A DNA stretch of 64,000 nucleotides from IMGVR_UViG_3300043464_001630:1-64000; one strand, 5' to 3'. Positions 22,324 to 46,291 are shown, counted from the first letter of the stretch. Made by a program: numbers and translations. Notes: generated by a model not told the origin, from the letters alone.

Positions 22324-23111
22324 CTAAGTATTTATCTTAAAACGGGTTACGGAACTTAAATTCTACCTTTTATCTCTGTGAAAGAAAAAAATTTCTAAAG
22401 AAATCCGAGGGATCTACCGATTACTTCTATGTACGAGTAAACCACCGAAATCACATGAAAAAAGACATCGAAAAAGAAATGACCCGACTTGCCTTCAAAC
22501 TGGCAGAATCTATCATCACACGGAACATTATTGATCACAAAGGTCTAGTTCATAAGAATACTCCATACGTTCAAGACATTGACGAAGAAGTTCTCGCAGA
22601 AGTACCAAAAATGTGGGGTCGTGATGCCGCACTTCATGACATTGAACTTTTCAACGACATTCTCTGTAATGTTATCGAAAAGCGACTGGATTGGTATCAT
22701 GCAGAAGGATTTACAGAAGAACTAGAAGATTGTTATCGTTTCTTCTCAAACGAAGAAATCAAAGAAAAAAACGACGAACTTTACGGAGACGACAACTACA
22801 GTCAGGACTAATATGCACAAAATTCTATTAGAATCTAAAAAGTTTGATAATTATTATGCGATTTTTATTAGCCGCGAATCTAGTTCTTTTTTTGGTGATT
22901 ATCTTTCAACTAAAGAGTGGCGCACCAATTATGGAATACGCATTATTGATGCCGAGTTTCAACAAGATTTGTCGTGCATTTTGATTCCAAATAAACTGGA
23001 TTATAAACTATTCGAAGCCGATCTTTTAAATTTTAAGAGAACACATAAAAATAAAGCGGTAAAGAATTCACAGTTTTGGGGGCAGAATAATGTCGGATAC
23101 GAAAATAAGCA

Positions 23112-23360
23112 TTGGACATTTTTCATATGACAAAAGAAAACACGGTAGTTATCAGAATGGAGAATTTCGATAAGGCTTATAGGAAGTTTTTGATCAACTA
23201 CAGAATCCACCGTTCTACGAAGCAAGTAACGCCTGTAGCGTTCGAGACATACCTTGGCATAGTCCATGTAGCGGATTGGAGAAATGAGGACGTTTTTCGT
23301 GAATATAGAATCGCCAATAAAGAACGGTTCGATTACGGCAAAGTTAAATTCGGATTGTGA
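23112..23360 (+). CDS. Divergent KYG-family small protein
   Basis: ends RIANKERFDYGKVKFGL. Confidence 0.5.
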   Translation: MDIFHMTKENTVVIRMENFDKAYRKFLINYRIHRSTKQVTPVAFETYLGIVHVADWRNEDVFREYRIANKERFDYGKVKFGL

Positions 23361-23437
23361 ATAAGAAACTTATCCAATAAAATCACGAGTTTATTAAATT
23401 TGCGATTTTCTGATAAACTTTTGTTTTTAAAATTTGC

Positions 23438-23466
23438 TTGACATAGTTATTTTAATAATGTATAAT
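23438..23466 (+). promoter_or_regulatory. Perfect consensus sigma70 promoter before very AT-rich ORF 23486
   Basis: TTGACA-N17-TATAAT with TG extension. Confidence 0.8.
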
Positions 23467-23752
23467 ACATTTATTAGTAATTAAAATGTTTAATTTAACT
23501 TTATTAAAAGATATTAATCTAACAAAAGAAGGTTTAATAGTAAATTATGGTACAGTAGAACAAACTAATATTAAAGTAGATATTATTATAAGTGACAATA
23601 CATTAAAGTTATCTTATTACGATATTAATGGTATTTACAATGTAAATAAAACATCATTACATAAATACACATTTTTACGTAAATTCGGCAGTGATGAAAT
23701 TATTGGAATATTACCACTTGACAGTGATTGGTACTTATGTTGGTGACATTAT

Positions 23753-24192
23753 ATGTTTGTAAGACTTACAGAAAAAAGTTTGCTGAAAATGATCGAAGTT
23801 TATTCTAGTGATGAAGCTTTAGGAATAAAATATGATTGCGGAGTTGAACATTATGAAATAATCGACGAGAAAGTGTTCTTTTTGGCAGTGATTACTCACG
23901 AACTAGAATTCAGCGAAATTTATTACGAATCTAGAAGATGGAAACCGATTAATTCTTAAAAATGTTTATTAAGCTCACCTACAGAGGGCTTTGGGCAATG
24001 GTGAAAACGAACAGAAGTCCAGCAGCATTTGGACTGGAGTATGACAATGAAATTTTACATTACAAAGTTGTTGACGAGCCGTTGTTTTTCTTATCTGTTC
24101 TTAAACTCGATATAGAGTTCGATGTAGTAACCAAAGAATCCAGAGCAGCAGTTCAGCGAGAAATTCTCGAACAATTTTATAGACAAACCTAA
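23753..24192 (+). CDS. Two KYG-family proteins, extended subtype (23753-23959, 23962-24192)
   Basis: MF(V/I)(R/K)LT...IIDEKVFFLAVITHELEF / VVDEPLFFLSVLKLDIEF. Confidence 0.6.
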
Positions 24193-24367
24193 AAAAGGTG
24201 TGCTACATTGCTAACACCTTCGAAGTTCTCCTCTGAACACAGAGACAGAAAGAAAAAGGGAAAAAAAACTAAAGTCGGTCAGAAAAAAGCCGATTAGTAT
24301 GTACGCCAGTGAAAACTGGTAGCAGCAAAACAAAAAACAAAAACAAAGAAAACAGAAAGACAACGAT

Positions 24368-25378
24368 ATGCACGGACTAACACAACGCGAAGACGGACGG
24401 ACTGAATTTTTCAGCGCAGTCACACGCGGATATCATCAACTGGGTCAGCTCAGTGATCGTCAGTTGACAGCAGAAGAGGCGATCAAGGAATCGCTTCTAA
24501 ACTGGGAAGTCGAGCAGGTTCCGGTCTATCACCGTAATCCAGTAGACGAAGAACTCATGGAAGTTCCTGATCAGTTCCTCGTTCGTAGGACTGACAACTA
24601 CAATCCGCTGAAAGTTATGAGTGCTCGCTACACGCCGATTCAGAATCTCGAAGCATTCACATTCTTCGACGAAATTATTGGTTCTGGTCGAGCATGTTGG
24701 GACACTGCTGGTTCTTTGAAAGGTGGTCGTATTGTTTTCATGCAGGCTGAGTTGGAAGGATCATTGTTTTTGAATTCCAATCCAGATGACAAGACAGTAA
24801 AGAAGATTTTGTTCTTTACAAGTCACGATGGATCGAAAGCTTTGACAGGGCTTCTAACTCCATACCGCACAATTTGCGAAAATTCGTTTAACGCGGCTTT
24901 GCGAAATAATACAAATTGTTTCAAGATTTATCATCGCAAGAACTTCGCAGAAAAGAAGCACGAAGCATCTAAGGTTCTTGGATTTGCAAATGCGTTTTAC
25001 GATGATCTCCAACACGTTATGAATCAGTTTGCTGAAGAAGAAGTATCCAAGTCTTATGTCGAAGGATTCATAAATACTCTAGTTCCCGCTGAGTTGAATC
25101 CAGAAACTGGTCGTATTTCGACTCGTACCAGTAATCGTCGAAATGACATTGCAACCTTGTTTACTTCTGGTAAGGGTAACAACGGACGCACCAAGTGGGA
25201 TCTGTTCAATGCAGTCACTGAATATGTTGATCATCATCAAGGTGGTCGTCTCACCGAATCCCGTAAGAACCGTTCAGAGGAAGGAGTTTCCATCGAAGCA
25301 GAAGCACGTTTCGAACGAGCGATCCTTGGATCAGGTGCTCGAATGAAGCAAGAAGCAATGAACCTCTTGCTCAACTAA
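24368..25378 (+). CDS. DUF932/DUF945 phage-plasmid protein
   Basis: LNWEV, YTPIQN, TAGSLKGG, SHDGS, RTICEN, TKWDLFNAVTEYVDH. Confidence 0.85.
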   Translation: MHGLTQREDGRTEFFSAVTRGYHQLGQLSDRQLTAEEAIKESLLNWEVEQVPVYHRNPVDEELMEVPDQFLVRRTDNYNPLKVMSARYTPIQNLEAFTFFDEIIGSGRACWDTAGSLKGGRIVFMQAELEGSLFLNSNPDDKTVKKILFFTSHDGSKALTGLLTPYRTICENSFNAALRNNTNCFKIYHRKNFAEKKHEASKVLGFANAFYDDLQHVMNQFAEEEVSKSYVEGFINTLVPAELNPETGRISTRTSNRRNDIATLFTSGKGNNGRTKWDLFNAVTEYVDHHQGGRLTESRKNRSEEGVSIEAEARFERAILGSGARMKQEAMNLLLN

Positions 25379-25387
25379 AAATCCCTT

Positions 25388-25422
25388 AAAGGAGGGATTC
25401 CGTAAAAAAGAATCCCTCCTTT
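25388..25422 (+). terminator. Intrinsic terminator
   Basis: AAAGGAGGGATTC / GAATCCCTCCTTT. Confidence 0.7.
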
Positions 25423-26230
25423 ATAAACACAAAAACAAACCCAACAAACAATTAAATTAGTCTAATTATGAACGCAAACATCAATACCGAAATCCAGCAG
25501 AATCCTCAGTACAAGATTGGTTATCATACAGCAATGGACGAAGTTCGTTATATTGTAGATAATCTTATGCGTGAACAAGAAAAAACAGAACTTGGAGTTG
25601 CGATTCGAGGTGTATTGAATAAGGTTTCTATTCGTGTCAAAGCTCTTGAAGTTGAACAAGGCTAAGAATGAAAGAAAAAGAAACCGAAAAAGAACCACCG
25701 TCAAAGATGACGCTCGAACAAGCAACTGTTTATCTTAAAAAGTTGGGTGAATGGGAAAATTCTTGGAAGTTTGATAGAGATACTATTATTAAGTGGGCAG
25801 AGTTTTTGAAGAGCAAGAACGCAAAGTGACATGACTAAGTATATTTTAATTGCTAGTTTAATTGGAGTTACTGCACTTTTAGCAGTACAAGAAAAAAGTG
25901 TAGTAAAGCAGAAACCAGAATATCCAAAAGTAATTCTAAATTCGCCTGATTCTTCACAAAGAATTATGACTGAATGTCCTAGGAATCTTCCTAAGAGTTA
26001 CGAATCCGTCTTCGCGGAAGATGGACAAACTCCAGAAATGGCAAAGCATTGTCCAAAATGTAGCATCGGAGTATATTCTCTACATGAGAATGAAGAGTTC
26101 GCAAGATGCACTTGGTGCGGTGACAAGGAAAAATAAAGAGTAATTTGGTGCAAAAAAGATCGGGAGAACCTAAAAAAAGACTAATGGTTCTCCCGATTTT
26201 GCCGATATATAGGTAGGTCAAAAAACTACC

Positions 26231-26707
26231 ATGCGTACTCAAGCCGCTTCTACCGTCGCAGAGATTGTCATTCGTAAAATGGCACATGAATTGATGGGTC
26301 ATTACAATCTATCACAAACTGGTTGGGAGTTTTATTTCAACGACAACCGCTCCAGACTGGGAGTTTGTAAAGATTATAATAAATCTATCGAGTTGAGCGT
26401 TTGGCATGTTAATAACAGTCCTTTTGAATCAGTAAAAAATACTTTACTGCATGAAATAGCACATGCTATCGTTGGTTGTGGTCATCAGCACAATCATGTT
26501 TGGCGTAGAAAAGCAATAGAAATCGGTTGTGACGGTGAACGGTGCGGTACAATGAATGCTCCGTACAAATATACTGCAATCTGTTCTAACTGCGAAACCA
26601 CATATCAAACCAACAGAGCATCAAATAAAGCTTGTGGTAGGTGCTGTAAAAAGTTTAACTCAGGCAGATATTCATCTGAATACAAATTTATCTTTAACAG
26701 AAACTAA
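26231..26707 (+). CDS. SprT-like zinc metalloprotease
   Basis: LLHEIAHA...HNHVW...IGC, C-terminal CxxC pairs. Confidence 0.85.
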   Translation: MRTQAASTVAEIVIRKMAHELMGHYNLSQTGWEFYFNDNRSRLGVCKDYNKSIELSVWHVNNSPFESVKNTLLHEIAHAIVGCGHQHNHVWRRKAIEIGCDGERCGTMNAPYKYTAICSNCETTYQTNRASNKACGRCCKKFNSGRYSSEYKFIFNRN

Positions 26708-26708
26708 A

Positions 26709-27458
26709 ATGAAATTTCAACACAAACTTCTTGTCATTCCAGACATTCATACTCATTATGAAAAAGCTGAACGTATTATTCAGAAGTTTAATAAAACCCA
26801 TAAGTTTATATTTCTGGGTGATTACTTCGATCAGTTTGGCGATACACCAGAAATTAATAGCGATACAGCTCATTGGCTTAAAGTGACAATGAATAGTTAT
26901 CCTGATTGGGTATACATACTTGGGAATCATGATTTGTCTTACATGCCGCAGTTTTCCTTAATGTGCAGTGGTTTTTCTACACAAAAGAAAACGGCTATTA
27001 ATGAAGTCTTGTTAATAGAAGATTGGAATAAACTAAAATATTTTCATTTCGAAAATGATCATTGGTTTTCACATGCTGGTATTACGAAGCATTGGTTTCA
27101 ACATCCGATGCGAGAAAAGATTTCGGTTGACAACGTACAAAGAATCATCGACGATGCGGTAATTAAGTTAAAAACTGGTGATGATGATAATGCGATCTGG
27201 GCGGCATCTTCAAGGAGAGGTGGAAGTAGTCCAGTCGGATCAATCGTTTGGCATGATTGGAGCGAACTTGAACTCATTCCCGAAATGTCTCAAGTAGTAG
27301 GACATAGTCCAGTTTCAAGAATTATTACGATTTCGGACGATAACACAAAATCTTCTATCACAAATGTTGACACAAGTGCATCAAGAGTGTACATGACCGA
27401 ACTATTAGAGATTGATGAGAACGGAAAGCGCAAAAAAATCGACACAAGTTTCATTTAA
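26709..27458 (+). CDS. Calcineurin-like metallophosphoesterase
   Basis: PDIH, GDYFD, GNHD, SHAG, VGHS; start ATG 26709. Confidence 0.9.
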   Translation: MKFQHKLLVIPDIHTHYEKAERIIQKFNKTHKFIFLGDYFDQFGDTPEINSDTAHWLKVTMNSYPDWVYILGNHDLSYMPQFSLMCSGFSTQKKTAINEVLLIEDWNKLKYFHFENDHWFSHAGITKHWFQHPMREKISVDNVQRIIDDAVIKLKTGDDDNAIWAASSRRGGSSPVGSIVWHDWSELELIPEMSQVVGHSPVSRIITISDDNTKSSITNVDTSASRVYMTELLEIDENGKRKKIDTSFI

Positions 27459-28235
27459 AGCTAAAGTGCCACACAGAATCTGCCGATTACTTAGTACCAT
27501 GAATAAAACCGAATGTCTTGATCTGCTGGAAAATGTTCTGAAGAACATCGAAAACCACAATTGGGAAGCACAAGTGGAAGACAGTAGTTTTCTTTTGGAT
27601 CACGAAGATTTGAAAGGTTATCTAGCTGACTTTGATCTACCAGAAGCAAAGATGAACAAGAATGTTTGTGTCGGTCTTCCGAAAGATTGGTTGCCTAATG
27701 TTTCTATTGAGTCGGAAGATTATGCAGAAGTATTAGAAAAGTACGAAGATGTTTATCATTTCCTTCGTACAGAAGCTTCAAGAGAAGTAGAAGCTCTTAA
27801 TTATATGGATGAATGTGACGAGAAAGATATGAACAATCAATTTTTTAGTGATTGCGGTGTGTACTAAAACAAACAAATAAACAACAAAATTATTAATATT
27901 ATGACAAAATATATCATTTCCAACGATCTAGATTCACGCGAAAAGTACACGTTTACTGCCGCAACGGAATTGGATAATCCATTCGAACTCGCTCTAGAAA
28001 CACTTGGTTATCATCTGAATCACAAAACCGATGACGGTAATGTACACGAATATGTATTGATCGAAAACGAAACTCGTAAGTCTTCATATCAATTCATGGA
28101 ATATATGTACTACCGTGCTTGTTTCGAGGCACTTAGCGAATTGGGATATTCTTGTGAGAAGGAGGAAGATTACTTTGAAATCGAAAAACAAAGATTTTTG
28201 AAAGCAAGTAATATTGTTCCGTTCGAATTGTAAGA

Positions 28236-28694: not shown

Positions 28695-28695
28695 A

Positions 28696-29574: not shown

Positions 29575-29671
29575 GTCTTTGATTTGCAGTAGTTTACTAG
29601 GAGAGTGATTTTATTTTCACTCTCCTAGTATTTTTTCCTAAAGTTCTTCTAGGAACTGCCGATTAACTCTT

Positions 29672-30010
29672 ATGAGAAAATTATTGTTCTTGTTCCTTCT
29701 CTTCCCTGTGGTTTCTGAAGCTTCTTATACACAGGTCGGAATTGCTTCTTGGTACGGAAAGGAAAACACAAAATCTTCTACTGGTAAGAAGCTATCGAAA
29801 CATCTTCCAGCGGTGGCTCATAAAACCCTTCCTATGGGCTCGAAGGTGAAAATCACCTCTCACCGCACCAAGAAGAGTGTAGTGGCCGTGGTGGAGGATA
29901 GAGGCCCTTACACAAAAGGACGCATCGTTGACTTGAACATCGTAGCAGCTAAAAAGCTAGGCATCACAAAATCTGGAATTGCAAAGGTGACTCTAGAAAA
30001 AATTAACTAA
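29672..30010 (+). CDS. rlpA: RlpA-like (DPBB) lytic transglycosylase
   Basis: Signal peptide; GIASWYG, AHKTLPMG, EDRGPY..GRIVDL. Confidence 0.9.
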   Translation: MRKLLFLFLLFPVVSEASYTQVGIASWYGKENTKSSTGKKLSKHLPAVAHKTLPMGSKVKITSHRTKKSVVAVVEDRGPYTKGRIVDLNIVAAKKLGITKSGIAKVTLEKIN

Positions 30011-30337
30011 AGTTCCGCAAAAAACTGCCGATATATAGTGTAGTCGGTCGAACCACTAAAAACCTAAAATTATGAGCGAAAAATATAAAGCTTCTTACTA
30101 CCGCACCTCCCAATATTCTTCCTATGAAGAGGCAGAGAAAAATGGTGGAGTGAACTACTGGTGCGAAACTTACGGATACGCTTCCACGATGGATAGTCTC
30201 ACGAATGTCAGGAATATTCTGGATTGTTGTGATCCAGAACTGAAGAAAGAGTTTCGCTTTATCTGGAATATCGACGGAGTGAATTATCCCGAATGTTCAT
30301 TCGCAGAATCTTATGATCTTTTGGATCGAAGCTGTAA

Positions 30338-31085: not shown

Positions 31086-33728
31086 AATTTACATAAACAA
31101 AGAAACTTACGAAAAATTAATTATCATTATATGAATTCGATTGACATGGAAGAGTACAGCAAAAAACTCAGTCAAGTACAAAATGGGATTATTTCCGAGG
31201 ATACTTGGATGGAATATTGCGCGGAATTGATGAAGCAAGTTCTGGAAGATGCTAAAGATGTAATGGTTCGAATGAAAGAAAGAGGCGATTAATTTAAAAA
31301 ATTCCTAAAGTTCCTCTTCTAAACTGCCGATTATTACGCATGAAAACGATTTCATTTGAAATTCAACCAGATGGTGATGTTTACTACATCAGTTGTGAAG
31401 CAATGAAGTTCTCTTCTTACACAAATGATCCCAAAAAACTCATAAAAGAGTTGTTTGAAGAATGGTTTGATGCCGATATGGGAGAAGCATTTCTTCCAGT
31501 TTAAAAAATCCCTAAAGTTCTTACCAAAACTACCGATTACTAAATATGAGCACAACAAAAAACGAAACAATCTTGATCGAGTGGAACGAAACACTTTTCA
31601 GCGAAAATATCTTCGCATGGTTCGAGAGTGGCATGGTTCCTGTATTTTCCAACAACCTCGAAGATTTAATGCTGCCAGATGATTATGTGCTGGAGAAGCA
31701 CGAGAGCGGTTCTTATGAACTTTTTGCTCACGATTCTGATTGTGATGAGTATCTTTATGTTGGAAGGCTTTTTACTCCGAAAGGAAAACCACTTGAAGAA
31801 TAAAAAAATTTCTAAAGTTCTTCCCAGATCTGCCGATATATAGGTACAGTAGAGAATCCCAAACAGAAAGAAATAAAATGAAAACTACCAAAATTAAAGG
31901 TTATAAAGTTGAATTCACAATCACCGACGATTCTTCGAACTGCTTCATCGAAAAAGGCAACTTTTTCTCAAGCCTTGCGGTTCTCAGTGATTTTGGATAT
32001 CTCGAAAGTCGTAGTGGCTCACAACATAAGGTGAATCCAGATACTATCGAAGAAATCTACGAGTGGGCAGTCGAACAAGGTTATTAAAAAAATATGCTAA
32101 AGTTCCTTCCAGAACTGCCGATTACTATTTATGACAAAACATCAGGCTGAGTACAACCGAGCAGTAACGATGAAGCTCGACGCATGGGTGCCCGCGTGCG
32201 GCGGAACTGAAGAGATTTTTGTTGCAAGAAATAAGAGGATTCTGTATGTCTATAATCCGAAAACTAAGAAACACGCATTTCTTGATGTTGACTCCGACAT
32301 GATAATGACGGACGAAGAATATTTCGCTCTTATTGCAAAATAATTCTAAAGAAATCCTAAAATCTGCCGATTACTAGACATGACAACGAAACGTACCGCT
32401 AACATCAACGGAACTTCACTTGTAGGAACCATCGAAACTACCTACAACAAGCTTGTAGAAGTGTTTGGTGAGCCTTGTTTGAATGATCCACCTTCAGAAC
32501 ATGAAAAGGTCACCACTGAATGGGATCTCGAATTTCCTTGCGGAACGGTCGCCACAATCTATAACTGGAAGAATTATGGAATTGATCCAGAACCGTATGA
32601 AAACTACTACTGGCATGTTGGTGGATATAATTTCACTGCGTTTGCTTTGGTGAGTGACGCACTAAAAAACTAAAAAAGTTCTAAAGTTCTCCCCAGAACT
32701 GCCGATATATAAGTACGATAGTTAATAACAACCAACCGAAAACCAAAATGAACACGATCATCCTCAACGCAGAAACCGCCGCCAATACTTATCTTACCGT
32801 TATGATGGATTTAATTAACGGTGATATGAAGTACAATACGGTTCTAGATACAGCAGAATCGCTCGCAGAGCTTGGAAAGGATCTCCAAGATTTGCTCTCT
32901 ACGACTCCTAGTGTGGCTTTTAATGCCTTTCGTAACCAGTTCCGCTCTGGTTCTACTATGTGCTTTGTTTCGGAAGAAATCAGCAAGAATCTAGAAATTT
33001 GGAACGATAGAAACGAAGAGTTTCAGATTGCAATCTTCCGCAATGACGGTCAGCCTGTGGGATTGTACGGCAAGGACGTTCTCTCTTGGTAGTTTGTAAA
33101 CAAAAAAATTGTTATGCAAATTTTGATCACTGCTACACTTTTGTTCATATTTTGGTTGTTTTTCGGATCGCACCTATATATGATTGGTATTGTTACCGCT
33201 GGAGTTGTTTTGGGAAACACTATCTATCATAAATTGATTCATTAAAATGAAAGAAATTGAACCAGAAATCACTTATCTTATTGGATACATAGTTGATGAA
33301 GAATTCTATGCTTCACACGAAGCAAAAACAAAACAAGATGCAATAGAAACTCGTGATGTGCTAGAAAAGAATCGTAAAGACACAAAGCCAAAAGTTAGTG
33401 ACGAACCATACACAATTTTTGTCAAAAAAGTAACATACACTGAACTTATCTAATATGAAAATCGACTACAAAAACGGAAGAATCGTAAGCAAGCAAGTAG
33501 ATTTTGACGGAGAAACGGAAGATGGTAGGACATTCACAATCGACGCCAACTGGAATGATTGGGAGCAGTGGAGCGTGGACGGAATCTCTTGGGATGATGC
33601 AGAAGGCACAGAAGAGGAAGAAGAAGAAATTAAAGAAAAGTTCTTGTCAGAGATGAACTGACACTACACAATGATTGAACGCTACACTGAGTGGGTGTAG
33701 CGTTCTAGTTTGGTGTATCTTCTCTTTT

Positions 33729-34145: not shown

Positions 34146-34447
34146 AAAGTTCTAAAGTTCTGCTGGAATTAGCCGATATATAAGGTACACCTCAGTAACC
34201 AGAAAACATATTATGAGCGGATACTACGACGACAACTTCGGACGGTGGGAGGACATGAACGATCCAGAAATGGTAGACTTCTATCACCAAGTTCAGAAAG
34301 AATCTGAATGGAAAACTTGCAAACAGTGCGAAGAACGTGTATTCTTGCGGCGGAATTATGTCATTTGTAATTCTTGTGCCGATCAAAACGAAAGGTTCTA
34401 AATAGAATTAATTAATTATGTTTAGATGTGTTTAAATAAATATCCTC

Positions 34448-34819
34448 ATGAACGACGAACAATTGATTTGGGAGGCATATGAAAACAATAATCAGTTTTT
34501 ATATCATGCCACATACAAGCCACATTTGAAGAAGATAATGCAGTATGGCTTGGGAGGATCGCCAAAGATTAGAAAGAATTGGGAGGATTCTAAACAAGGC
34601 GTGGTGTATTTAGCTTATGATGCAAATGTAGCAGAATCTTATGCTGAAAGTTCTGATGATGTACCAGAATCCTATTTAGATAATATCATCATATTAAGAA
34701 TTGATACTTCTAAACTAGATAGAAATAATCTAAAGAGAGATCAGAATGTAATTGACGGAGAAGATACATTAGAGTATCACGGGATTATACCACCGGACGC
34801 AATAGAAAGAATTAAATAA
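34448..34819 (+). CDS. MND-leader Tpt1/ART-like protein
   Basis: MNDEQLIWEAY; LYHAT...IMQYGL, VYLA, IIPP. Confidence 0.6.
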   Translation: MNDEQLIWEAYENNNQFLYHATYKPHLKKIMQYGLGGSPKIRKNWEDSKQGVVYLAYDANVAESYAESSDDVPESYLDNIIILRIDTSKLDRNNLKRDQNVIDGEDTLEYHGIIPPDAIERIK

Positions 34820-35243
34820 TCCCGAAAGTATTAAAACTAATTATTAAGTTATGGCAAATGAAGTCGTTCTCAAACCGAATTCAAATAATGGAGTATCACA
34901 AATAAGTCAGAATATTCCAGCATCACCAGTAGCATCACCAGCACCAACAGCACCTCCTCCTGCTACGCCGCCGAATCCTCCCAAGTCCACGAAATTTCCG
35001 AATAAGATACCAAAAACGGCATGTGCTACTCCTTATCCTTCTCTTATTCGAGAATTGGTATTTACTTATTTACAGCGGGAATATTCCAGCACGGCTCAAA
35101 TGGCTAGGATCATGCATCATGCCAAGAAAAAAGGATTGATTAAAAATCCAAAAGAGTTTAGAAAATGGATGTTAAAAGAAATCTGTAAATCTATTAATGC
35201 TATTGATAAATGGATACAAATGTAGTGAATTGGCGAGAAATAT

Positions 35244-36633
35244 ATGAAATGTAAAATATCTACAAATATTGTTAGAGAAAGATTGATGCCTTGGTACAAG
35301 CAACAAGTAGATGCGTGTAATATGACATGGGAGGCACTAGAACCTCTTACTAATAAATTAGGATTGAGTTATATTAATTGTGTGATAGTGGACGGAAAAT
35401 ATAATGATGAATATTTTTTGTTTAGAATTATAGACAAAGAACTATTCTTTCTTGCGGCAATTAGCCATGGCATTGCATTCGTGGAGGCATGACAAAAAAA
35501 TTTCATGTAGATAGAAAAAGTTCTAAAGAACCCGCAGGTTTTGTCCGATTATAGTATACGCCAGTTAAAAATTGATAAAGAATTGCACAAAAAAATCAAG
35601 TGTAATCATGACAACTACAAAAACTACTTACAAAGTAAAGAACCTTGTTGATGGTTGGACTTCCCTGCCTCATACTACTCTGGAAGAAGCTCAGACTGAT
35701 CTTGTGCGTTTGCGGGATCGTGTTGGCATGATGGAATGGAAGACCAGACCACCACACAATTATGTAGTGGTGATGGAAGTTGTCACAACCAAACAAACCA
35801 TAATCGAGTAGGTCTGAGTGACAAGTGATTGAATAGATGTATAAAAACATGTTTATTAGAATTACTGATTGGGGTAATGGTTCTCATTCGCTCTTTAGTT
35901 CTCAACTTGGTTTAAGAATGATCGAGCCTATTTGTTTAGATAATGCTCATAATTATATTATAATAAATAAACCTCTATTCATGCTATCAGTGATCAAATA
36001 TGGTATAAGGTTTGATGAAGTATGAGAATATTGATTGATTCTACACATTACTATGCTAGAGCAGGATCATGTTATGGTGTACAGTACGATGATAAAACAG
36101 GCGCATTTTACCATGTTACGAATGGACCAATTTTAGAAGAAAACACTGACATTCCCAGTACACTTGGATTAAAGCATCTCGAAACAGATGCAAGGCTTAA
36201 TTATATATTTGAAGTAATTAATAAAAAGCTATTCTTTCTATCTGTGTTTAAATATGGTTTAGAGTTCGAATTAATAAATGAAGAAAGAGATGATTGTTGA
36301 TATACGAAAATGGGGTTCAGCAGAACTGCTCGATATTCCCTCATGGGAGTTTGGGCTTGTCGTCCCTAAGTTTAAAACATCAGTTTATGTATGGGAAGTA
36401 TTTGATAAAAAGTTATTCTTTTTAATGGTAATCAAATATGGTATACAATTCGAGGAAGTATGAAGATACACATAACCGATTTCGGAGATTGTCTTTTATG
36501 GATTATTGATGCGGAAGAAATTGGATTGAATTCGCCTCCATATATAGATGCAAAGTTTGAGGTAATAGATGAGAAAAAGTTCTTCCTATCAGTAATCAAA
36601 TATGGTATAAAATACGAGGAAGCATTAAATTAA
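35244..36633 (+). CDS. Cluster of KYG-family proteins: 35244-35492, 35837-36025, 36022-36300, 36278-36463, 36460-36633 (last not in ORF track)
   Basis: All end (I/V)x(D/N)xxxF(F/M)Lxx(I/F)(K/S)(Y/H)G(I/L)x(F/Y); 36460 translates MKIHITD...EVIDEKKFFLSVIKYGIKYEEALN. Confidence 0.65.
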
Positions 36634-36766: not shown

Positions 36767-37977
36767 GTTTTAAAATTCTCTATATAAAGAGAAAAAAAAT
36801 TACACAATCAACAACAATTAAGTAATATTAAAAAATATGAGTAACAAAATATATGTAGAAATCGGTCAAGATTCCAAAGAACTATACTTGATGTATAAAA
36901 ATTTCTGCGAATCCAATCAAATTAAAATCAAGACTCAAAAACATTTCGATTCTGAAGACGAAGAAATGGAAAAGAAATTCTGCGAGAAATTTGGAAGTAC
37001 TGAAGAAGCAGACGAGAAGATGTTTGAAATGCACGGGGTGAAATATGGAACATCATATAATCATCCTCTCGATGAATATAGATGGATCACTGCATTTGAA
37101 GTAGTGAACAAGGAAGCCTTTGAAAAGACTCCTTGTTATGAATACTTGAAGAAGAAACAATATGATGGCGATGATGTCTATATTACGGAGAAAAGAGTAC
37201 AGAACAGAAAGCACTCTTTCAAACAACGAGTAGATGCTTTTTTCGGAGATGACTAAAGAATGAATAAATGCTCCATGTAAGGAGAAAAAGATGTTGACAG
37301 CACAAAGCCAGTGTCCTATCATAAACACATGAAAACAAAAAAGCGTTACGTTGATTCGGGAAGAATATTCGAATACAAATCAAAGTATATGAATGATGAT
37401 CCTAATCATATTCTGTCTGTATTCAAAAACTTCCTTGAAGAAATGAAGGAATTTAAAAAGATTAAGAACCTTGTTTATGGTATAAAGTATCAATCAAACT
37501 ATACTCGCGTATTAGAATCTGATGAGGTATACGAAAAAAGAGTAGCCGAATATAAAGAAGAATTGGCTAAAAAGCGGATTGTTCTAGAAGAACAGGCAAA
37601 AGAAATGGGCTTGAAGCTCAAGCCAGTAAAGGATGTTGTTCCTAGAAGAGAATATGTTGTGGTGCGCTATCCAGATCTGCCAAGTGATGTTCCTTTCAAG
37701 ACATTCTGCGAAAACATAATCAATCATTTAGAAAAGCACTGGGACATTGATACAGAAGAACATTATCTTACGATGAACTTCTTTATTGAATTCAACGGTC
37801 AGAGACTAGAAAATGATTATGAATTCAACAGACGGGTGTATCACGAACGACTCGAAAATACCAAGCTCAAGCGCACAGAAAAGGAAAACAAGCTCAGAGA
37901 ACTCAAATCTCTGGCAAGACAGATGGGCGTGGAATTGGTTAAGGCATAAACAAAAATGTTCGATGTAGGGAGAAAAG

Positions 37978-38250: not shown

Positions 38251-38290
38251 AAGCTAGATGTAGATATCGGAAGATGATTAAATAAGTATC

Positions 38291-38725
38291 ATGAATGACG
38301 AAGAACTGATATGGGAAGCTTATAAAGCACAGGAAGATATAGAACTAGGTATTGATGACCTTGTGCTTCGTAAACGTAAGCTCAGAGGAGAAGGAATCAG
38401 TTACGTCATTTACGATAAAAAACAAACACCTACGAAGATGCTAGGACATCTCAGTGGCTTTGAGGATAAGTTTGGTAAGCACGATGGAATGTTCCATCTA
38501 TACAAGACTGAACTGACCGAAGCGACTCGTAATGATCCACAGTACCAGAACCGTGGAATATACAGAATTGCTGTACAAAAGGTAGCTAACCTTTATCCGA
38601 ATGGATTATATGTGAGTCAATTCGAAGCATCGCCACAATTAAGGAATTCATTAAAACGAATGAGTACATATGAGTTCTTAAATGATGATCGTTATATAGA
38701 TGTGTTACATATCAAGCCAGAATAA
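38291..38725 (+). CDS. MND-leader GNAT-like protein
   Basis: MNDEELIWEAY; PQYQNRGIY motif A-like. Confidence 0.5.
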   Translation: MNDEELIWEAYKAQEDIELGIDDLVLRKRKLRGEGISYVIYDKKQTPTKMLGHLSGFEDKFGKHDGMFHLYKTELTEATRNDPQYQNRGIYRIAVQKVANLYPNGLYVSQFEASPQLRNSLKRMSTYEFLNDDRYIDVLHIKPE

Positions 38726-38734
38726 ATAATCGTT

Positions 38735-40319: not shown

Positions 40320-40667
40320 ATGTAGGGAGAAAGATGTAGTAATAAAGAATACTATTAACTTTTATGTCCTAGACACATGCCTGTTATCTGTTATCTGATT
40401 AATAACAGAAGATCTAAAGAGGAATAAACTAATAGAAGATCCTCTATTACTTAAATATCTACTAATATCTACTAATAAACAATCCTCTATTAATTATTAG
40501 TATCCATCTATTGTGTTATTCCTTTAAACTAACACATAATACTAGATAATAGTATTAAAAACTACGAATAATTAGGGATAGCGCCCCACTTTGCCCCACT
40601 TTGAGACAAAAAGGCTGGACTAGAGACAACGAACTGTCTAGTATCGGCGTAAGTATTAAATAATCGT

Positions 40668-41090
40668 ATGAACGACGAGCGGTTGATATGGGAAGCCTAC
40701 AAAAGTAGAGAGGTAGAAACTATGGAATTTCCTATGTTATCTAAACCTAATGGAGTGTCGTATCGAGGCAAACCAGATTGGAAAAAATTTAAAGTAAATG
40801 GCTATTACAGGGATGGTGATGTATTAAGATACATATATTCACAACACAAAGAATTCGAAGACGACCACCGAGTAAAAAGAATTTATAAATTAATATCAAT
40901 AGATCCAAATAAATTAGAACCCAGCGAATGGGAAATAGATGATTATAAAGTAGAAGATTTGTCTAAGTCTAATGAACCATATCCTCCAATCGTAATCAAT
41001 AAAAACAAATCTATCGTAGATGGCGGACACAGATTAGAAGCAGCAAAAGTTAGAGGAGATAAAGAAATTCTAGTATTCTTACAACAATAA
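40668..41090 (+). CDS. MND-leader ParB/Srx domain protein
   Basis: MNDERLIWEAY; YPPIVI...IVDGGHRLEAA. Confidence 0.7.
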   Translation: MNDERLIWEAYKSREVETMEFPMLSKPNGVSYRGKPDWKKFKVNGYYRDGDVLRYIYSQHKEFEDDHRVKRIYKLISIDPNKLEPSEWEIDDYKVEDLSKSNEPYPPIVINKNKSIVDGGHRLEAAKVRGDKEILVFLQQ

Positions 41091-42163
41091 GAATTCGGTA
41101 GTGTATAAACTAATAGAGGATTCTTTATTATTTAAATAACAAGAAATATCTACTAATAAACTATACCTAAAATAATAGACAATCCTCTATTAGTACTAAA
41201 CAGACTAATGATATACTTATCAACTAGGCAAAATTTGCCTAGTAAGATACAAAAATAGTCGTTATTATTCATTTTTTTGTAGTAAACCAGAAAAAAATTC
41301 CTGTTTTTGTTACGAATGTTTGTATATTGTATACAATACATAACGAAATAACATCGTGAAGGTACACGGTGTTTACTCTGTTGGAGGGATAAATATCGAG
41401 TCTTTTTATTTACAAACGATAAAAACTTGTAAAAAGAATAAAAGTGTCGACACTCTATAAAGTTGAACTCGTCCAAAATTATTTTTTATCAAAAGTCAAG
41501 TAAATTTTTAAAGTCCTCCTTCTAGGCGATTTTAGGTTGTGTACAGAGAGAACAGATATTTCTTTACTATTTTACTAGAAGATCCTCTATTCCTTTGATC
41601 CCAAAAAACGACAGATCCTTATATGTCAATAAAAAAATGCTAGCTCTAGCATCAAAAAGATGTTTTACAGAGAGAACAGAAAGTCAACACAAAAATTTCC
41701 CCAATAAAAAAACTAAAGAATCCTCTACAACTCACCGATATATTCTTATGACCGAAACATTATTTGAACTTTGGGTAGAGCGGCAGATCGACAGAATCGA
41801 CCGTGAATACATGAACGACCAGTTATCAGAAGAAGAGTACACTAATAAAATGAAAGAATTGAATAAGATGGAAGAAGAGTTCATCAATAATCTCGTACTA
41901 GAAAAATGCACTCTCTAGTAACAAAAACATGTACGCTTGTTATATTCATTTGTATATTAGAACGGTTACTATAAACTCGTGAATATAATAAACTCGTGAC
42001 TCTATGAGAAAAGTTTCGTTCTCGGGCAGAAGTCTCGCTCCCCCACACAAACGCTACGCTTCCACTCCAGAGTCCAGCACCAAATAGTAGTTGACACCTT
42101 CTATCTACAGTATATTATACAGTAGTAATAAAAGATCCTCTATAACTCACAGAATTAACAAAT

Positions 42164-42430
42164 ATGAATAACCTTATTGATCCTCTCAAAATTATCAAAT
42201 CCACGAATGGCAAGTTCTTCAGTATCTCTTATACTAATAAGAAGGGAGAGACGAAAGATTACATTTGTCGTATAGGCGTAAAGAAGCACCTGCGTGGAGG
42301 CGAAAAGTACTTTGTGCCCGATAGTGTTACTGTTTATTCTGTTACTAATAGTAATAAAGGATACAAGACATTTGTAAGAGAACAAATAAACAGTATTAAA
42401 GTGGGTACTACCCTGTGGAGTGGAGTGTAA
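42164..42430 (+). CDS. Small SH3/WYL-like phage protein
   Basis: GKFFSISYTNKKGE...RIGVKKHLRGG. Confidence 0.45.
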   Translation: MNNLIDPLKIIKSTNGKFFSISYTNKKGETKDYICRIGVKKHLRGGEKYFVPDSVTVYSVTNSNKGYKTFVREQINSIKVGTTLWSGV

Positions 42431-42465
42431 AGGTAATTTGTCAGGGTCACCTCTCTTCTCTCCTT

Positions 42466-45400
42466 TGTTCCATGTGGAACATTCTCCAACGGAGAGAAGA
42501 GAGGATTCTGGGGAGAGTATAGTGGTTATGTTTAGAATGAATATGTTCTTATGCACATAATGCATAATGATTATTAGATATGCTTATAATGCATAAGAAC
42601 TATTAGATATGCACATAATACATGTGTGTTATTAGGTATGCTTAAATTGCATATTAGTTTCGCTTATCTGGGGTTTTCTCGTGGTTTAGGTCAGACCCTC
42701 CCCCCACCTCAAGGTTAATAAGAATCCTCTACTAATGGAAGGTTTATTTTCACTTTTTTTGGGTTTGTTTAGAAAAGGTCAGACCCTCCCCCCGTACCTC
42801 TAGGTTAGTATGCGATCCAGTATTTTAGCAAGAAAAAAGAAAAATAAAAATAGTGCTAAAGAAAAAAGATTTTCAGTTTTTCCTAAAGAGTTTTTTTCAA
42901 ATGCCTATTAAAAGGAGCCATGCAATTTACAAATTCCATTTGCTTAGAGTTAGCTACCCTTGCCTCTCTCAATCAGTTAGAGAAGCTCGCCGAGCGCCTG
43001 ACTGAATTGCAGCCCTTAGTTAAACAGGGACGCGGAACATGGGGGGAGAATATTGAAAAGATGTTGGCTTTTCTCTCTGACCGAAAGCCCCGCTTCTCCA
43101 TCTTTGCCAAGGGAAACGGAAAACTGCCGTTTGCTGCGTTTTCTGTGCTTCCGCTTGTTTCCTGCCCCGGTTCTGGTGCTTGTAAAAACTGGTGCTATTC
43201 TCTGAAAGCATGGCGATATCCAGCGGCTTTCTTTCGCCAGTTGCAGAACCTAATTCTTTTGATGTCCCCAGAGGGGCGGAAAACTGTCGCAGAGGCATGG
43301 AACAAGCTCCGCAAGGGGGCGCATGTTCGGTTGTACGTTGATGGGGACATTCACTCTCTTGAGATTCTAGAATATTGGCAGAACCTTTGTCGCCAGCGTT
43401 CAGATTTGCAGGTTTATGGGTATTCTAAAAGCTGGGGAATATTCTTGCGTTTCGATGGAGAATGGGCGTCGAACTATACTCTCAACCTTTCAAGCGGTTC
43501 GAAGTTTGTAAACAGCCCTAAAGTAAAAGAACAAATTTCCGCCCTTCCGATTGTGCGGGGTGAGTTTGTGGCTGTTCCCGTGGCTTCGAAGGCTCCAAAG
43601 CGCAACCTTAAAACGGGTCAGCCTCTGAACCCCGCAGCATGGCAGTCTCATAGGTTAGAGGTTCTAGCCGCTGCAAAGAAGCTAGGAATGGGTAAAGTGT
43701 TTGTTTGTCCGGGTTTGTGTGGATTCTGTGCAAACGGAAAACACGCTTGTGGCAATCGTGCATTTAACGGAATTCCGATTGTGATTGGAATCCATTAAAA
43801 TAGTTCTAAAGAATCCTCTATTCTTTGCCGATTAGTATATACCGGAAGGTTCGATCCCTTCCGGTTCACTCAGAAACCCAAAAAACAGCCATGATGCTCA
43901 AAGCCAAAAAATCGAAAAAGTCACAAAAAATTGTAATTGCATTCCCGATTGCAAACACTAATGGTCAAATGGTTTCGATTCATACAACCGTTGGAAAGTA
44001 TTCTTTTATTCTTGATTACTGGGCTGGTGATGCCGTCGAAAACGCTCTCAAGAGAATCGAGGAAGAGAATGTCACCGGAATCGGTTTTACGACAGCAAAC
44101 GGAACACCGATTCAAGTAAGGTTGCTAGATTAGCAGGTTTTAGAGAATCCCCTACTCTTTACGAAGGGCGGGGGATTCTCCGTTGTTCCACATGGAACAT
44201 TATAGGAACAGATAATAGGTTAAACCCTCCCGTCCTTCCTCTAGGTTAATAAGGATTCTCTATTACTACAACAGAAAAGAAAAAAAAGTTTCTGCTAAAG
44301 TTTTCTAGAAACCTGTTACTGATTCTTTGTTCCACATGGAACATTCCAGAATCTAGTGAGTATACAAACCCTCCCGTCACACCTATAGGTTAATAGAGAA
44401 TCCTCTATTCTTACAACCTTTTTCTTTTTTATTTTTCTGCTAAAGTCTTTCACCTTTCTTGCCTATTAGTAGTTATGCCGAAACATTCCTCTGACATTGC
44501 TTACGAGTTGACAAACCTCTTGAAGTTTGAAAGCATGAAAAGCGTTGGCGAATTTAGTGAAGCCTACGTCATCGGATACTTGAGCAGTATCTTGAAGAAT
44601 CTTGCAAAGTATCCTGAGGTTCAGCGTGAACTGGAAAAAGAAGTAGAAAGAATAAAAAAGTACTAAAGACGCTCTGCTGAAAAACCGACTACTCTGTATG
44701 ACTGTAAAACTGATCAACGCCGCAATCAAACACCTCAACCTCGAAATCATCAAAGGAAGCGGATACGTTTATTTTCTTGACTTGACTACTGGATATCAGG
44801 TGGGCGACTCTGTGCATATTGCATACCTCAATCATGTCAGCTTGGATCGGTGGATCGAAGAAGCCGAAGGTGCAAGAAAAGACGAAGAAGTAAAAAAGTT
44901 CTAAAGAATCCTCTACAAATACCGACTACTATATACCAGAAGGTCCAATCCCTTCTGGTTCACTCAGAAACCTTAGTACATTATGGAAAAACTCACCTTG
45001 GAAGAAATCACCCGCATTGCTGAAAAACTGGGAGTCAAGTTGGACGGGAATCCAACGCCAGCGCAGAAAGCCGAAATCGCAAACATACTTGTCACCCTTT
45101 TGGAAGTTGAAGCGAAACTGAAAAAGAACTAAAGTCTCTCCGAGAAAAACCGATTACTATATACCGGAAGGTTCCAGTCCTTCCGGTTCTCAACCCAAAA
45201 ACCAAACTACATTCTATGATCACCAAAAACGAAAACGGCACACTCTCAATCGGCGACATTCAAATCGTTTCTTCTTATAACAAAGAAACAAAGCAGCATA
45301 CCTTCAATCTGCTTAAAGCGGGTTGTGTTCCCGTTCAGCATATCGGGAATCACCTGACGCTCCGAAACAATATCACGAAACTGGTGGAACAAGTAGAAGC

Positions 45401-46291
45401 TACCTACGTTGAGGAAGTGGCCTCAGAAGTGGCCTCAGAATCGTTCAGCGAGACTATTCTGGACATTACAGAATTCGTTCAGATTCCAGTCGACGACAAC
45501 GCCCCCACTTCTGAGTCAGAAGATTATAACCTCTTCAAGGATTATCTAAAGAAATTCTCCGAAGCTACCGGAGAGGAACGGGAGAAATTTGCGGAGATTG
45601 CCAGTCAGATTCTCCTTGGCATGAACATTCAAGCGGTGTAAAGAATCCCCCCGCCACACTCACTAGAGACTCCCCCCTATCTAGTGAGTGTGGTATCTTT
45701 TTCACTTCTCTATTAAAAATGAATTTATAGCATATTCGTTTTTATATCATCGAGTCGTGAGTCAACCAAAAAAATCCCGCTCTCCCCTAAAAACGCTAGG
45801 CTCCTACACACAAGCGTAGGACTCCCACAAAAATAATACGGGGGCGCAAATAGTTCTAAAGAATCCTCTACAGTTGCCGATAGATATAGTGTCAGCGTAG
45901 TAAACCTTAAATTCACTTCTTATGTTCCAAGCAAACCTTGTCAAAGCTGTCTCTCACTACCCGCTCTCCAAGTTGATCCCTGATTCTATCGGAAACGAAA
46001 AAGACGAAGGTCTCTATGACTATTTTATCGACAGTCTTTCCGAAGGACGTATTGTGGGAGCAGGAGCTACTTTTATGCTTCTCGAACCCAAACTGTTCAG
46101 GAAGCACCTAATGAGTGCTCTAGAATTCGGCGAATTCAATCTCGCCGCTCTTGAGATTGAAGATATCCTAAGAACAACTGACACTCTGATTCTCCGCGAC
46201 ATTCACGTTTCATTGGCAGAGTAAAGAAGAAAGAAGTAGTCCCCTATGCTCTACGGAGTGTAGGGGATTCTCTATTGTTCCACATGGAACA
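42466..46291. repeat. Four parS-like 16-bp palindromes TGTTCCAYRTGGAACA (42466, 44184, 44328, 46276)
   Basis: Read directly; one mismatch from the parS palindrome TGTTCCACGTGGAACA. Confidence 0.7.

Follow-up and report, generated by a model that had tools for sequence, protein, structure and literature searches.

Which form of RNA polymerase transcribes the small early-type genes of an uncultured T4-like lake phage, when 21 promoter-like sites in front of them resemble those of the bacterial flagellar sigma factor (sigma-28/FliA) instead of the usual sigma-70 type? We examined a stretch of 64,000 nucleotides (hereafter the window), which is the first 64 kb of a 236 kb contig from a divergent T4-like phage. 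An earlier note on the window had proposed that about 22 sigma-28-like promoters run an early-type region between 22 and 46 kb, that none occur in its tRNA or late regions, that no sigma gene is present, and that the phage either uses host FliA, tying infection to the motile or swarmer state, or encodes its own sigma-28-like factor in a sigma-70/sigma-28/gp55-like cascade.

We first asked whether the motif is real. The pattern of the earlier note, CTAAAG followed by (G/A)CCGAT(T/A)A, gives 10 matches when a gap of 13-15 nt is allowed, against 0.01 expected from shuffled sequence, and all 10 are on the + strand between 22395 and 45156. A position-weight scan with a two-block matrix and a flexible spacer gives 21 sites, again all on the + strand, from 22395 to 45856, with the last octamer ending at 45883, whereas shuffled sequence gives 0-3 weak hits; the count and the coordinates both match those of the earlier note. 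Scanning contig positions 1-140,095 with the same matrix finds nothing comparable outside 22.4-45.9 kb, only two chance-level hits. The observation that the note had made is therefore confirmed, including the absence of such sites from the late regions, except that the window contains no tRNA region: ARAGORN finds no tRNA and Rfam searches find nothing.

The consensus of the sites is an A-tract, then CTAAAG(TTC), 11-12 bp, and then GCCGAT(AT/TA), which closely matches the published E. coli sigma-28 consensus TAAAGTTT-n11-GCCGATAA (PMC2859248). In the -35 element, CTAAAG is invariant in all 21 sites and is followed by TT(C) in 11 of 17 strong sites. In the -10 element, CCGA occurs in 19 of 21 sites and CCGAT in 17, G or A precedes it at all but one site, and AT or TA follows; four sites (42883, 44440, 44663 and 44901) are degenerate, with CCTA or CCGAC in the -10 element. 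The gap from CTAAAG to (G/A)CCGAT is 14 nt at 13 sites and 15 nt at 8 sites (15 or 16 nt when counted to CCGAT), equal to n11 or n12 between the octamers. Across 40 sites in three genomes, the 7th base after the -10 octamer is A in 30 and is preceded by T in 26, and the E. coli aer start lies 6 bp after the octamer (PMC2859248). All 21 window sites are followed by an ORF of at least 49 aa with a predicted leader of 0-65 nt; in 8 of them the conserved A is the A of the ATG, so that those mRNAs would be leaderless, and three 5' hairpins begin exactly at the same point. As a search listed no RNA run holding this sequence, the start points are inferred from sequence alone. The individual sites and associated features are collected in the table below.

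Predicted promoters and associated features of the window. Start points (+1) and leaders are predicted from sequence; L022 and L023 are two related lake-phage contigs carrying orthologous sites.
Positions	Strand	Feature	Predicted start, leader and gene	Remarks
22395..22423	+	sigma-28-type promoter	+1 at 22430; 25-nt leader to the ORF at 22455	orthologous site in L022
24269..24296	+	sigma-28-type promoter	+1 at 24303; 65-nt leader to the DUF932 gene at 24368	orthologous site L022:9904
27461..27489	+	sigma-28-type promoter	+1 at 27496; ATG at +4 (27499)	orthologous site L023:5184
29638..29665	+	sigma-28-type promoter	leaderless; +1 is the ATG at 29672 (DPBB/RlpA-like protein)	preceded by a terminator-like hairpin at 29595-29630
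30007..30034	+	sigma-28-type promoter	+1 at 30041; 31-nt leader	orthologous sites L022:19299 and L023:5948
31305..31333	+	sigma-28-type promoter	leaderless; ATG at 31340	orthologous site L023:7706
31512..31539	+	sigma-28-type promoter	leaderless; ATG at 31546	
31812..31839	+	sigma-28-type promoter	+1 at 31846; 32-nt leader	orthologous site L023:8645
32097..32124	+	sigma-28-type promoter	leaderless; ATG at 32131	
32346..32373	+	sigma-28-type promoter	leaderless; ATG at 32380	
32681..32708	+	sigma-28-type promoter	+1 at 32715; 33-nt leader	orthologous site L023:8936
34152..34179	+	sigma-28-type promoter	+1 at about 34186; 27-nt leader	
35523..35551	+	sigma-28-type promoter	+1 at 35558	weaker -10 (TCCGATTA)
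41713..41741	+	sigma-28-type promoter	leaderless; ATG at 41748	spacer of the AATCCTCTAC sub-family
42883..42910	+	degenerate site (GCCTATTA)	before the GP88-like gene at 42920	weak score of 15.8 bits
43806..43834	+	sigma-28-type promoter	+1 at 43841	+1 is the first base of a 9-bp 5' hairpin
44440..44468	+	degenerate site (GCCTATTA)	leaderless; ATG at 44475	
44663..44691	+	variant site (ACCGACTA)	leaderless; ATG at 44698	
44901..44928	+	variant site (ACCGACTA)	+1 at 44935	+1 is the first base of a 5' hairpin
45129..45156	+	sigma-28-type promoter	+1 at 45163	+1 is the first base of a 5' hairpin
45856..45883	+	sigma-28-type promoter (GCCGATAG)	32-nt leader to the ORF at 45922	
43841..43865	+	5'-terminal 9-bp hairpin	begins exactly at the predicted +1	copies at 44935-44959 and 45163-45187 keep the pairing through a compensatory change; -13 to -15 kcal/mol, z -2.6 to -4.2
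23438..23466	+	sigma-70-type promoter	20 nt before three small tandem ORFs	12/12 match, 17-nt spacer, in an intergenic gap
51589..51617	+	sigma-70-type promoter	GTG start codon 6 nt after the -10	11/12 match; divergent partner at 52504-52476 on the - strand
38279..38293	+	example of the late (gp55-type) class, TAAATA-N5-6-ATG	also leaderless	26 such sites end at predicted gene starts in the window, none between 22.4-34.4 or 41-50 kb

Conservation among relatives bears on whether the sites are promoters at all. L022 and L023 carry the same motif at 8 orthologous positions, although the downstream proteins are only 35-91% identical, while the more distant relatives L024-L027 lack the motif upstream of the same gene, restricting it to a sub-clade comprising the window, L022 and L023. 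One could suppose that the sites are instead repeated binding or recombination sites, such as operators, homing sites or shuffling cassettes, since spacer sub-families exist (TTCYYCCCAGAACT, which forms an AGTTC-N6-GAACT palindrome, and AATCCTCTAC) and gene order differs between the window and L023 at these cassettes. We consider this very unlikely, given that all sites have one orientation, a fixed distance to start codons, an ATG exactly at octamer+7 in 8 of 21 cases, 5' hairpins at the same point, and conservation only of the two sigma-contact blocks; a role in recombination would be in addition to promoter function, not instead of it.

Nor do the sites look like sigma-70 promoters. In the inferred register, positions -12 to -7 read CGATAT or CGATTA, which lack the A at -11 that sigma-70 needs, and no TTGACA-like hexamer lies upstream; the region as a whole shows no excess of sigma-70-like matches (62 against 72 expected). 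It also seems unlikely that the sites are read by host sigma-70 re-targeted by a phage appropriation factor (MotA/AsiA style) or by a phage single-subunit RNA polymerase. T4 relatives do re-target sigma-70 and many early ORFs here have no known function, but no RNA polymerase, MotA or AsiA family hit appeared in any scan, the motif is bipartite with a variable 14/15-nt gap and a variable spacer sequence, unlike the contiguous promoters of single-subunit polymerases, and the match to sigma-28 spans 14 of 16 consensus positions at sites such as 32681.

Two further promoter classes are nevertheless present. Several 12/12 sigma-70 matches lie inside AT-rich coding DNA, and counting only the intergenic ones leaves a few credible sigma-70-like promoters. 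A late class is represented by TAAATA-N5-ATG sites (36 observed against 9 expected), matched by a gp55 late sigma gene at about 104 kb of the contig (phrog_234, E 5e-21). The sigma-28-type motif is distinct from this class, being bipartite and lacking a TATAAATA-type single -10 element.

Which sigma factor, then, would read the sigma-28-type sites? A FliA-like gene elsewhere in the genome, which the earlier note had suggested looking for, was sought in several ways. Pfam or PHROG scans of about 65 window ORFs and tblastn with E. coli FliA found no sigma gene in the window, in agreement with the note as far as tested; precomputed Pfam tables covered all called genes at 52-160 kb and about 7 kb upstream of the contig start; and tblastn with E. 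coli FliA and an HMM of a phage sigma-24-like family covered 1-160 kb. The only sigma found in the roughly 70% of the genome covered (about 168 of 236 kb, omitting about 69 kb from 159,671 to roughly 229,000) is gp55. The relatives L022 and L023 likewise show no sigma in 32 kb. Four candidates for a hidden sigma were read individually, namely the sigma-70-driven ORFs 37329-37949 and 51624-52112, the 244-aa ORF next to gp55, and the 292-aa early ORF, which is DGQHR/ParB-like, and none looks like a sigma.

Two leads towards a phage-borne factor were rejected. An IMG/VR contig (L003) has four CTAAAG...CCGATAT sites next to a weak Sigma70_r2 protein, but in 80 related loci the two words sit inside a sigma-70-type promoter (TTGACA-N17-TAGAAT) with a 17-nt gap, and the sigma-24-like family has no homologue in contig positions 1-160 kb. 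The fliA gene of Microcystis phage MaAM05 is no precedent either, as the first 50 kb of that record, which holds the gene, carries ribosomal-protein, nusG and secE genes and looks like bacterial DNA.

A phage-encoded sigma remains possible, though we regard it as less likely than a host factor. This could be a captured FliA-like gene in the 69 kb not covered (about 29% of the genome), or a factor too divergent for Pfam or PHROG to recognise, made from one of the few sigma-70-type promoters, which could provide an immediate-early step; the sigma-28-type sites would then be a delayed-early or middle class, as with SPO1 gp28. Phage-borne group-3 sigma genes do exist, as tblastn with E. coli FliA hits 183 phage records, mostly Bacillus phages, and the absence of the motif from L024-L027 would also fit gain of a phage sigma in one sub-clade. 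Against this, much of the remaining sequence must hold T4 core genes not yet seen (tail fibres, the rest of the baseplate, gp41/61/45), which leaves little room, and a factor reading the canonical sigma-28 consensus this exactly should keep recognisable regions 2 and 4.

The host side of the question gave conflicting hints. The DUF1501 gene has an 89% hit in a Bacteriovoracaceae MAG, into which a relative's contig was binned, but this gene is conserved at 77-100% across more than 100 phage-sized contigs and the MAG contig looks phage-like, such that this amounts to binning evidence only, on which reliance is warned against (PMC13768751). Some early genes look actinophage-like, the DUF1501/PSCyt genes are of the Planctomycetes type, and the protein atlas gave no host signal. 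The nine DNA runs are lake or freshwater metagenomes, and contigs from four runs showed strain variants over 29.6-35.6 kb. Among cultured phages there is no DNA match in 50,697 records, and gp23 is only 32% identical to cyanophage gp23; a strict promoter pattern gave only single hits in IMG/VR, so the clade is absent from that collection.

Our best explanation, which as a whole, including the choice of a host sigma, we hold with about even confidence, is that the 21 sites are real bipartite promoters of the sigma-28 (FliA/SigD/WhiG) class, running the early-type small-gene block. In this view a bacterial core RNA polymerase carrying a sigma-28-family factor binds the -35 octamer (C)TAAAGTTC and the -10 octamer GCCGAT(AT/TA), the upstream A-tract probably helps as an UP element, and transcription starts at the conserved A seven bases after the -10 octamer. 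At about a third of the promoters the mRNA would have no leader, while the others would have short A-rich leaders without a Shine-Dalgarno sequence, three of them beginning with a protective 5' hairpin. The sigma is most likely the host's own sigma-28-family factor, provided that the host has one, used immediately after DNA entry in the way T4 uses sigma-70, with late genes then read by the phage gp55 sigma from TAAATA promoters. The genes served include anti-defence-like early functions (DUF932, two SprT-like proteins and a DGQHR ParB-like protein), which should need expression on entry; on the other hand, dependence on a conditionally active host sigma looks risky for a phage clade that appears widespread. 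What the analysis itself establishes is the motif, its confinement to one block and one strand, its geometry relative to start codons, its conservation in relatives and the gp55 gene, whereas the start point, the identity of the sigma, transcription by sigma-28 and not sigma-70 holoenzyme, and the timing are inferred. The interpretation offered by the earlier note is thus supported in part: the promoter class, its confinement to the early-type block and the existence of three promoter classes hold, but the choice between host and phage sigma is only shifted toward host FliA, and the temporal cascade and the link to a motile or swarmer state remain inference.

A bolder possibility, to which we give slightly less than even weight, is that the phage has no sigma-28 of its own and runs its entire early programme on the host's FliA-type holoenzyme, so that productive infection is tied to the host's motile state. 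In an extreme version the host would be, for example, a predatory Bacteriovoracaceae bacterium, in which sigma-28 is the master sigma of the free-swimming phase, the only phase exposed to phage. This would be the first phage early programme known to depend on a flagellar sigma, combined with genome-wide leaderless translation. Phage early transcription is a textbook case of hijacking the housekeeping sigma-70 of the host, with alternative sigmas entering later and, in known cases, being phage-encoded; an early block run by flagellar-type promoters would mean either that a phage senses and depends on a host physiological state (motility or a developmental phase), or that a T4-like lineage has captured a FliA-type factor. 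Our literature searches found no description of phage promoters of this class. The strict octamer+7 geometry also gives a clean natural set of predicted leaderless and hairpin-capped mRNAs, and the promoters, being compact and orthogonal to sigma-70, could be useful as parts.

Among known systems, the regulons of phage-encoded sigmas (SPO1 gp28 and gp33/34; T4 gp55; SigF/G-like sigmas of Bacillus phages, PMC9429907) likewise have a non-sigma-70 promoter class defining a temporal block of phage genes, and gp55 with its TAAATA class is present here too; however, no second phage sigma gene was found in about 70% of the genome, and the motif is the host-type sigma-28 consensus, not a phage-specific one. 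T4 early promoters and the PeSL promoter cassettes of T4-type phages resemble the present sites in being many, strong and similar, with an upstream A-tract, lying on one strand between small ORFs of a plastic early region (here 21 sites for about 58 small genes) whose gene order is shuffled between relatives, but T4 early promoters are sigma-70 promoters (TTGACA/TATAAT) and the present sites have neither hexamer. In Bdellovibrio bacteriovorus, where FliA acts as a global and not purely flagellar regulator, 92 of 140 attack-phase promoters read TTAAG-N16-CCGATA (PMC3627812), so that a sigma-28-type motif serves a whole non-flagellar gene programme with almost identical spacing (CTAAAG-N15/16-CCGAT here); that is a cellular programme whereas this is a virus, and the binned contig of one relative is the only, and weak, link to such a host. 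Finally, class 3 flagellar promoters of bacteria share both octamers, the 11-12 bp spacing and the implied start 6-7 nt after the -10 octamer (PMC2859248), whereas here 21 such sites are packed into 23.5 kb of a phage genome in front of small early-type genes, with an upstream A-tract, with a third of them predicted to give leaderless mRNAs, and with no flagellar or chemotaxis genes involved.

The pattern of the earlier note (CTAAAG followed by the CCGAT-containing block), searched with a 13-15 nt gap, occurs 10 times against 0.01 expected, and all 10 matches are on the + strand between 22395 and 45156. CCGATWA alone is not enriched in the window (21 against 15.6 expected), so the signal lies in the pairing of the two blocks. 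A relaxed search followed by a two-block weight matrix recovered 21 + strand sites from 22395 to 45856, whereas shuffled sequence gives 0-3 weak hits and the - strand gives one weak hit. The gap between CTAAAG and CCGAT is 15 or 16 nt; a run of about five A's lies upstream of CTAAAG (12-16 of the 17 strong sites at each position), TTC follows CTAAAG in most sites, and CTG or A precedes CCGAT. Four sites are degenerate (see the table). The observation made in the earlier note is real, and the sites are more regular than could be seen by reading the sequence alone.

The window forms positions 1-64,000 of a 236,391-bp lake-metagenome contig (JGI 3300043464 Ga0453100_0000002), and all sequencing runs that contain it are lake or freshwater DNA runs. 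We followed the contig to position 159,670 through overlapping stretches that agreed without a single mismatch. It is a divergent T4-like myovirus, carrying gp23, the gp21 protease, portal, gp13, gp15, terminase, sheath, tube, baseplate genes, gp43, UvsX, gp32, gp46/47, UvsW, UvsY and gp44; inteins interrupt three essential genes, the gp55 late sigma, the portal and the large terminase. Its gp23 is only 32% identical to the nearest cultured phages, which are cyanomyoviruses, and there is no nucleotide match in 50,697 phage records, while protein searches show a large uncultured clade on contigs of 140-255 kb. Two DUF1501 paralogues and a weak PSCyt2 (DUF1549)-like ORF are present, families typical of Planctomycetes-like bacteria; the DUF1501 copy at 54244 is conserved at 77-100% identity across more than 100 clusters on contigs of 200-250 kb, and so is a core gene of this phage clade and not a recent pick-up. 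The phage also contains an IS607-like pair, a serine resolvase followed by a TnpB/Cas12f-like protein, which is present in the same place in the contigs of two other samples. One lake run (X3) carries a variant lacking 433 bp, which removes an ORF preceded by a late promoter, and neighbouring segments differ by 5-9%.

The same matrix, run over contig positions 1-140,095, finds the motif only at 22.4-45.9 kb. That block consists of about 58 mostly small + strand ORFs, of which the few recognisable ones look like early or anti-defence functions: DUF932, two SprT-like proteins, a metallophosphatase, an AAA_33 kinase-like protein, a GP88-like protein, a DGQHR/ParB-like protein and a DPBB lytic-transglycosylase-like protein.

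Coordinates of individual features (window positions unless stated otherwise; sigma-28-type sites are given by their first base)
Feature	Position	Strand	Remarks
Sigma-28-type site	24269	+	Compared with site 9904 of locus L022
Sigma-28-type site	32681	+	Matches 14 of 16 consensus positions
Sigma-28-type site	42883	+	Degenerate
Sigma-28-type site	43806	+	Followed by the 9-bp hairpin
Sigma-28-type site	44440	+	Degenerate
Sigma-28-type site	44663	+	Degenerate
Sigma-28-type site	44901	+	Degenerate; followed by the 9-bp hairpin
Sigma-28-type site	45129	+	Followed by the 9-bp hairpin
Sigma-70-type promoter	23438-23466		12/12 match, intergenic
Sigma-70-type promoters	51617 and 52476		Divergent pair, intergenic; 51617 has a start codon 6 nt after the -10
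Sigma-70-type promoter	42118		Intergenic
Sigma-70-type promoters	1338 and 1699 (ends)		Intergenic, extended -10 elements
Sigma-70-like matches	19251 and 37322		Start codon 6 nt after the -10
Examples for the scarcity of Shine-Dalgarno sequences and start codons at the predicted +1	2114-2127, 3048-3061, 53971-53984
Three tandem small ORFs (86, 68 and 76 aa)	23486-24192		Behind the promoter at 23438-23466
ORF-free stretches of shared modules	42400-42900, 44130-44450, 46230-46700
29-nt tandem repeat	42550-42653
GC-rich (44-48%) ORF-free stretches	46700-47270 and 49280-50100		Either side of the UvrD-like helicase gene
Folded segment	46960-47262		-111 kcal/mol, z = -2.6
ORF-free gap of 800 nt	1322-2125		Fold z-score -1.2
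Serine resolvase	10174-10776
TnpB/Cas12f-like protein	10760-12355
Two DUF1501 paralogues and a weak PSCyt2 (DUF1549)-like ORF	7100-8395, 54244-55608, 21742-22323(-)
Segment lacking in run X3	34421-34855		Includes late-promoter ORF 34448-34819
Intein-interrupted gp55, portal and large terminase genes (contig beyond the window; L numbers denote sequenced stretches)	About 103.5-105.0 kb (L019:4240-5715), L013:1066-3303, L030:3469-6054

To examine whether the sites behave as promoters, 40 of them (21 in the window and 19 in two relatives) were anchored on the -10 octamer. The 7th base after the octamer is A in 30 sites and is preceded by T in 26, and an ATG sits exactly there in 9 sites. In the window every site is followed by an ORF of at least 49 aa with a leader of 0-65 nt measured from that position, which we take as the predicted +1; eight sites have a leader of 0 and two have a leader of 3. 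As a given trinucleotide has about a 2% chance of occurring at a fixed offset, eight exact coincidences cannot be chance. Three promoters are followed by a 9-bp hairpin whose first paired base is the predicted +1, and one copy keeps the pairing through a compensatory change, which is what a 5'-end-protecting hairpin should look like. The geometry agrees with the published E. coli sigma-28 consensus, TAAAGTTT-n11-GCCGATAA, and with the mapped aer start, 6 bp after the octamer (PMC2859248); the site at 32681, for example, reads TAAAGTTC-n11-GCCGATAT. In that register positions -12 to -7 read CGATAT or CGATTA, which lack the A at -11 that sigma-70 requires for recognition by its region 2; no TTGACA-like hexamer lies at -35, and the region shows no excess of sigma-70-like matches (62 against 72 expected).

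A metagenome scan with the DUF932 protein returned eight loci, of which the two closest are 82% and 87% identical in protein. These two loci, L022 and L023, carry 9 sites in 21 kb and 10 sites in 10.9 kb, respectively, all on the gene strand and with the same architecture. Eight sites lie within 20 nt of the position expected from the orthologous downstream gene, although those proteins are only 35-91% identical. Between orthologous promoters the two sigma-contact blocks are kept while the spacer changes, as seen by comparing the window site at 24269 with its L022 counterpart. More distant relatives (62-65% identity) have other sequences upstream of DUF932.

Two further promoter classes were identified. 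TAAATA followed after 5-7 nt by ATG or GTG occurs 36 times against 9.2 +/- 2.6 expected, and in 26 cases it ends exactly at a predicted gene start; none of these lies at 22.4-34.4 or 41-50 kb. The cognate late sigma gene, gp55, is present, sitting between UvsW and gp47 as in other T4-like phages (phrog_234, E 5e-21), and a 244-aa ORF between gp55 and gp47 has no family hit. A few sigma-70-type promoters sit in intergenic gaps, and three sigma-70-like matches have a start codon shortly after the -10, whereas several further perfect matches lie inside AT-rich coding DNA and are not counted. The perfect intergenic promoter precedes three tandem small ORFs that each begin with ATGTTT and have no family hits. 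Shine-Dalgarno sequences are almost absent (6 of 116 predicted starts), and all three promoter classes often place the start codon at the predicted +1, such that many mRNAs would begin at the start codon; leaderless translation appears to be genome-wide in this T4-like phage.

Three ORF-free stretches are built from the same modules: a hairpin (TCCCCTA...TAGGGGA), a 16-nt palindrome TGTTCCACATGGAACA (four copies in all), one to three copies of ACCCTCCC-N-CCTCTAGGTTAATAAG (six copies), and the word AGAATCCTCTA, which also forms the spacer of four promoters; one of these stretches contains a tandem repeat. The GC-rich ORF-free stretches flanking the UvrD-like helicase gene gave no Rfam match even at E <= 1 and no tRNA; they may be structured RNAs of an undescribed kind, and may be what the earlier note took for a tRNA region. 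An 800-nt ORF-free gap that begins with two sigma-70-type promoters could also be a noncoding RNA, although its fold is only weakly supported.

A gene for a sigma-70-family factor that could read the sigma-28-type sites was sought by Pfam or PHROG scans of about 65 window ORFs, in precomputed Pfam tables for every called gene at 52-160 kb and for a 7.3-kb stretch upstream of the contig start seen in another sample, by tblastn with E. coli FliA, and with an HMM of a phage sigma-24-like family; only gp55 appeared in the sequence searched, which leaves out about 69 kb of the contig. That remainder must still hold many T4 core genes (tail fibres, the rest of the baseplate, gp41, gp61 and gp45), and a factor able to read the canonical sigma-28 consensus this exactly should be recognisable. 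On that basis we consider the host's own sigma-28-family factor about as likely as not to be responsible, and a phage-encoded factor a possible but less likely alternative; the anti-defence flavour of the genes served also argues for expression by pre-existing host enzyme.

Two leads proved false. An IMG/VR contig (L003) with four look-alike sites next to a weak Sigma70_r2 protein proved to be a different thing, as in 80 related loci the two words lie inside a sigma-70-type promoter with a 17-nt gap. L003 and about 25 of the IMG/VR loci L039-L117 represent another group of large aquatic phages, which carries a conserved 220-aa sigma-24-like protein with a Cys-rich insert (1555 relatives) and has sigma-70-type promoters (TTGACA-N17-TAGAAT) with CTAAAG conserved just after the -35 and CCGATAT just after the -10, dual specificity being one possibility. 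The record named Microcystis phage MaAM05 (GenBank MW495066.1) holds the only "phage fliA" outside Firmicutes phages and fecal contigs in a tblastn search of phage records with E. coli FliA, but the first 50 kb, which include that gene, hold ribosomal-protein genes, nusG, secE, ispG/H and a type-3 secretin, and look like bacterial DNA rather than a phage.

Hints on the host point in different directions, and none of them decides the matter. A DUF1501 gene has an 89% match on a contig of a MAG labelled Bacteriovoracaceae, but that contig carries two tRNAs and a stretch shared with the phage and looks like a relative's DNA, and the gene is itself conserved in the phage clade; this is binning evidence only, a kind of evidence known to mislead (PMC13768751). 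Some early genes have their nearest families in actinophages (DUF932, GP88 and L5_gp82), and leaderless mRNAs are typical of Actinobacteria, while DUF1501 and the PSCyt2-like ORF are typical of Planctomycetes-like genomes.

Taken together, the interpretation offered in the earlier note is supported in part. The motif, its confinement to one block, its geometry and its conservation in relatives are shown by the sequences, and the assignment to sigma-28-type promoters is well supported on these grounds; the start points, transcription by a sigma-28-family factor, the source of that factor (host or phage), the timing of expression and the tie to host motility proposed in the note are inferences. 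Promoters of this class are known from bacteria, whereas our literature searches found no description of them in phages. Segment order differs between the window and L023 at these cassettes, which recalls the PeSL cassettes of T4-type phages. That sigma-28 can run a large non-flagellar programme is seen in Bdellovibrio, in which 92 of 140 attack-phase promoters read TTAAG-N16-CCGATA (PMC3627812).
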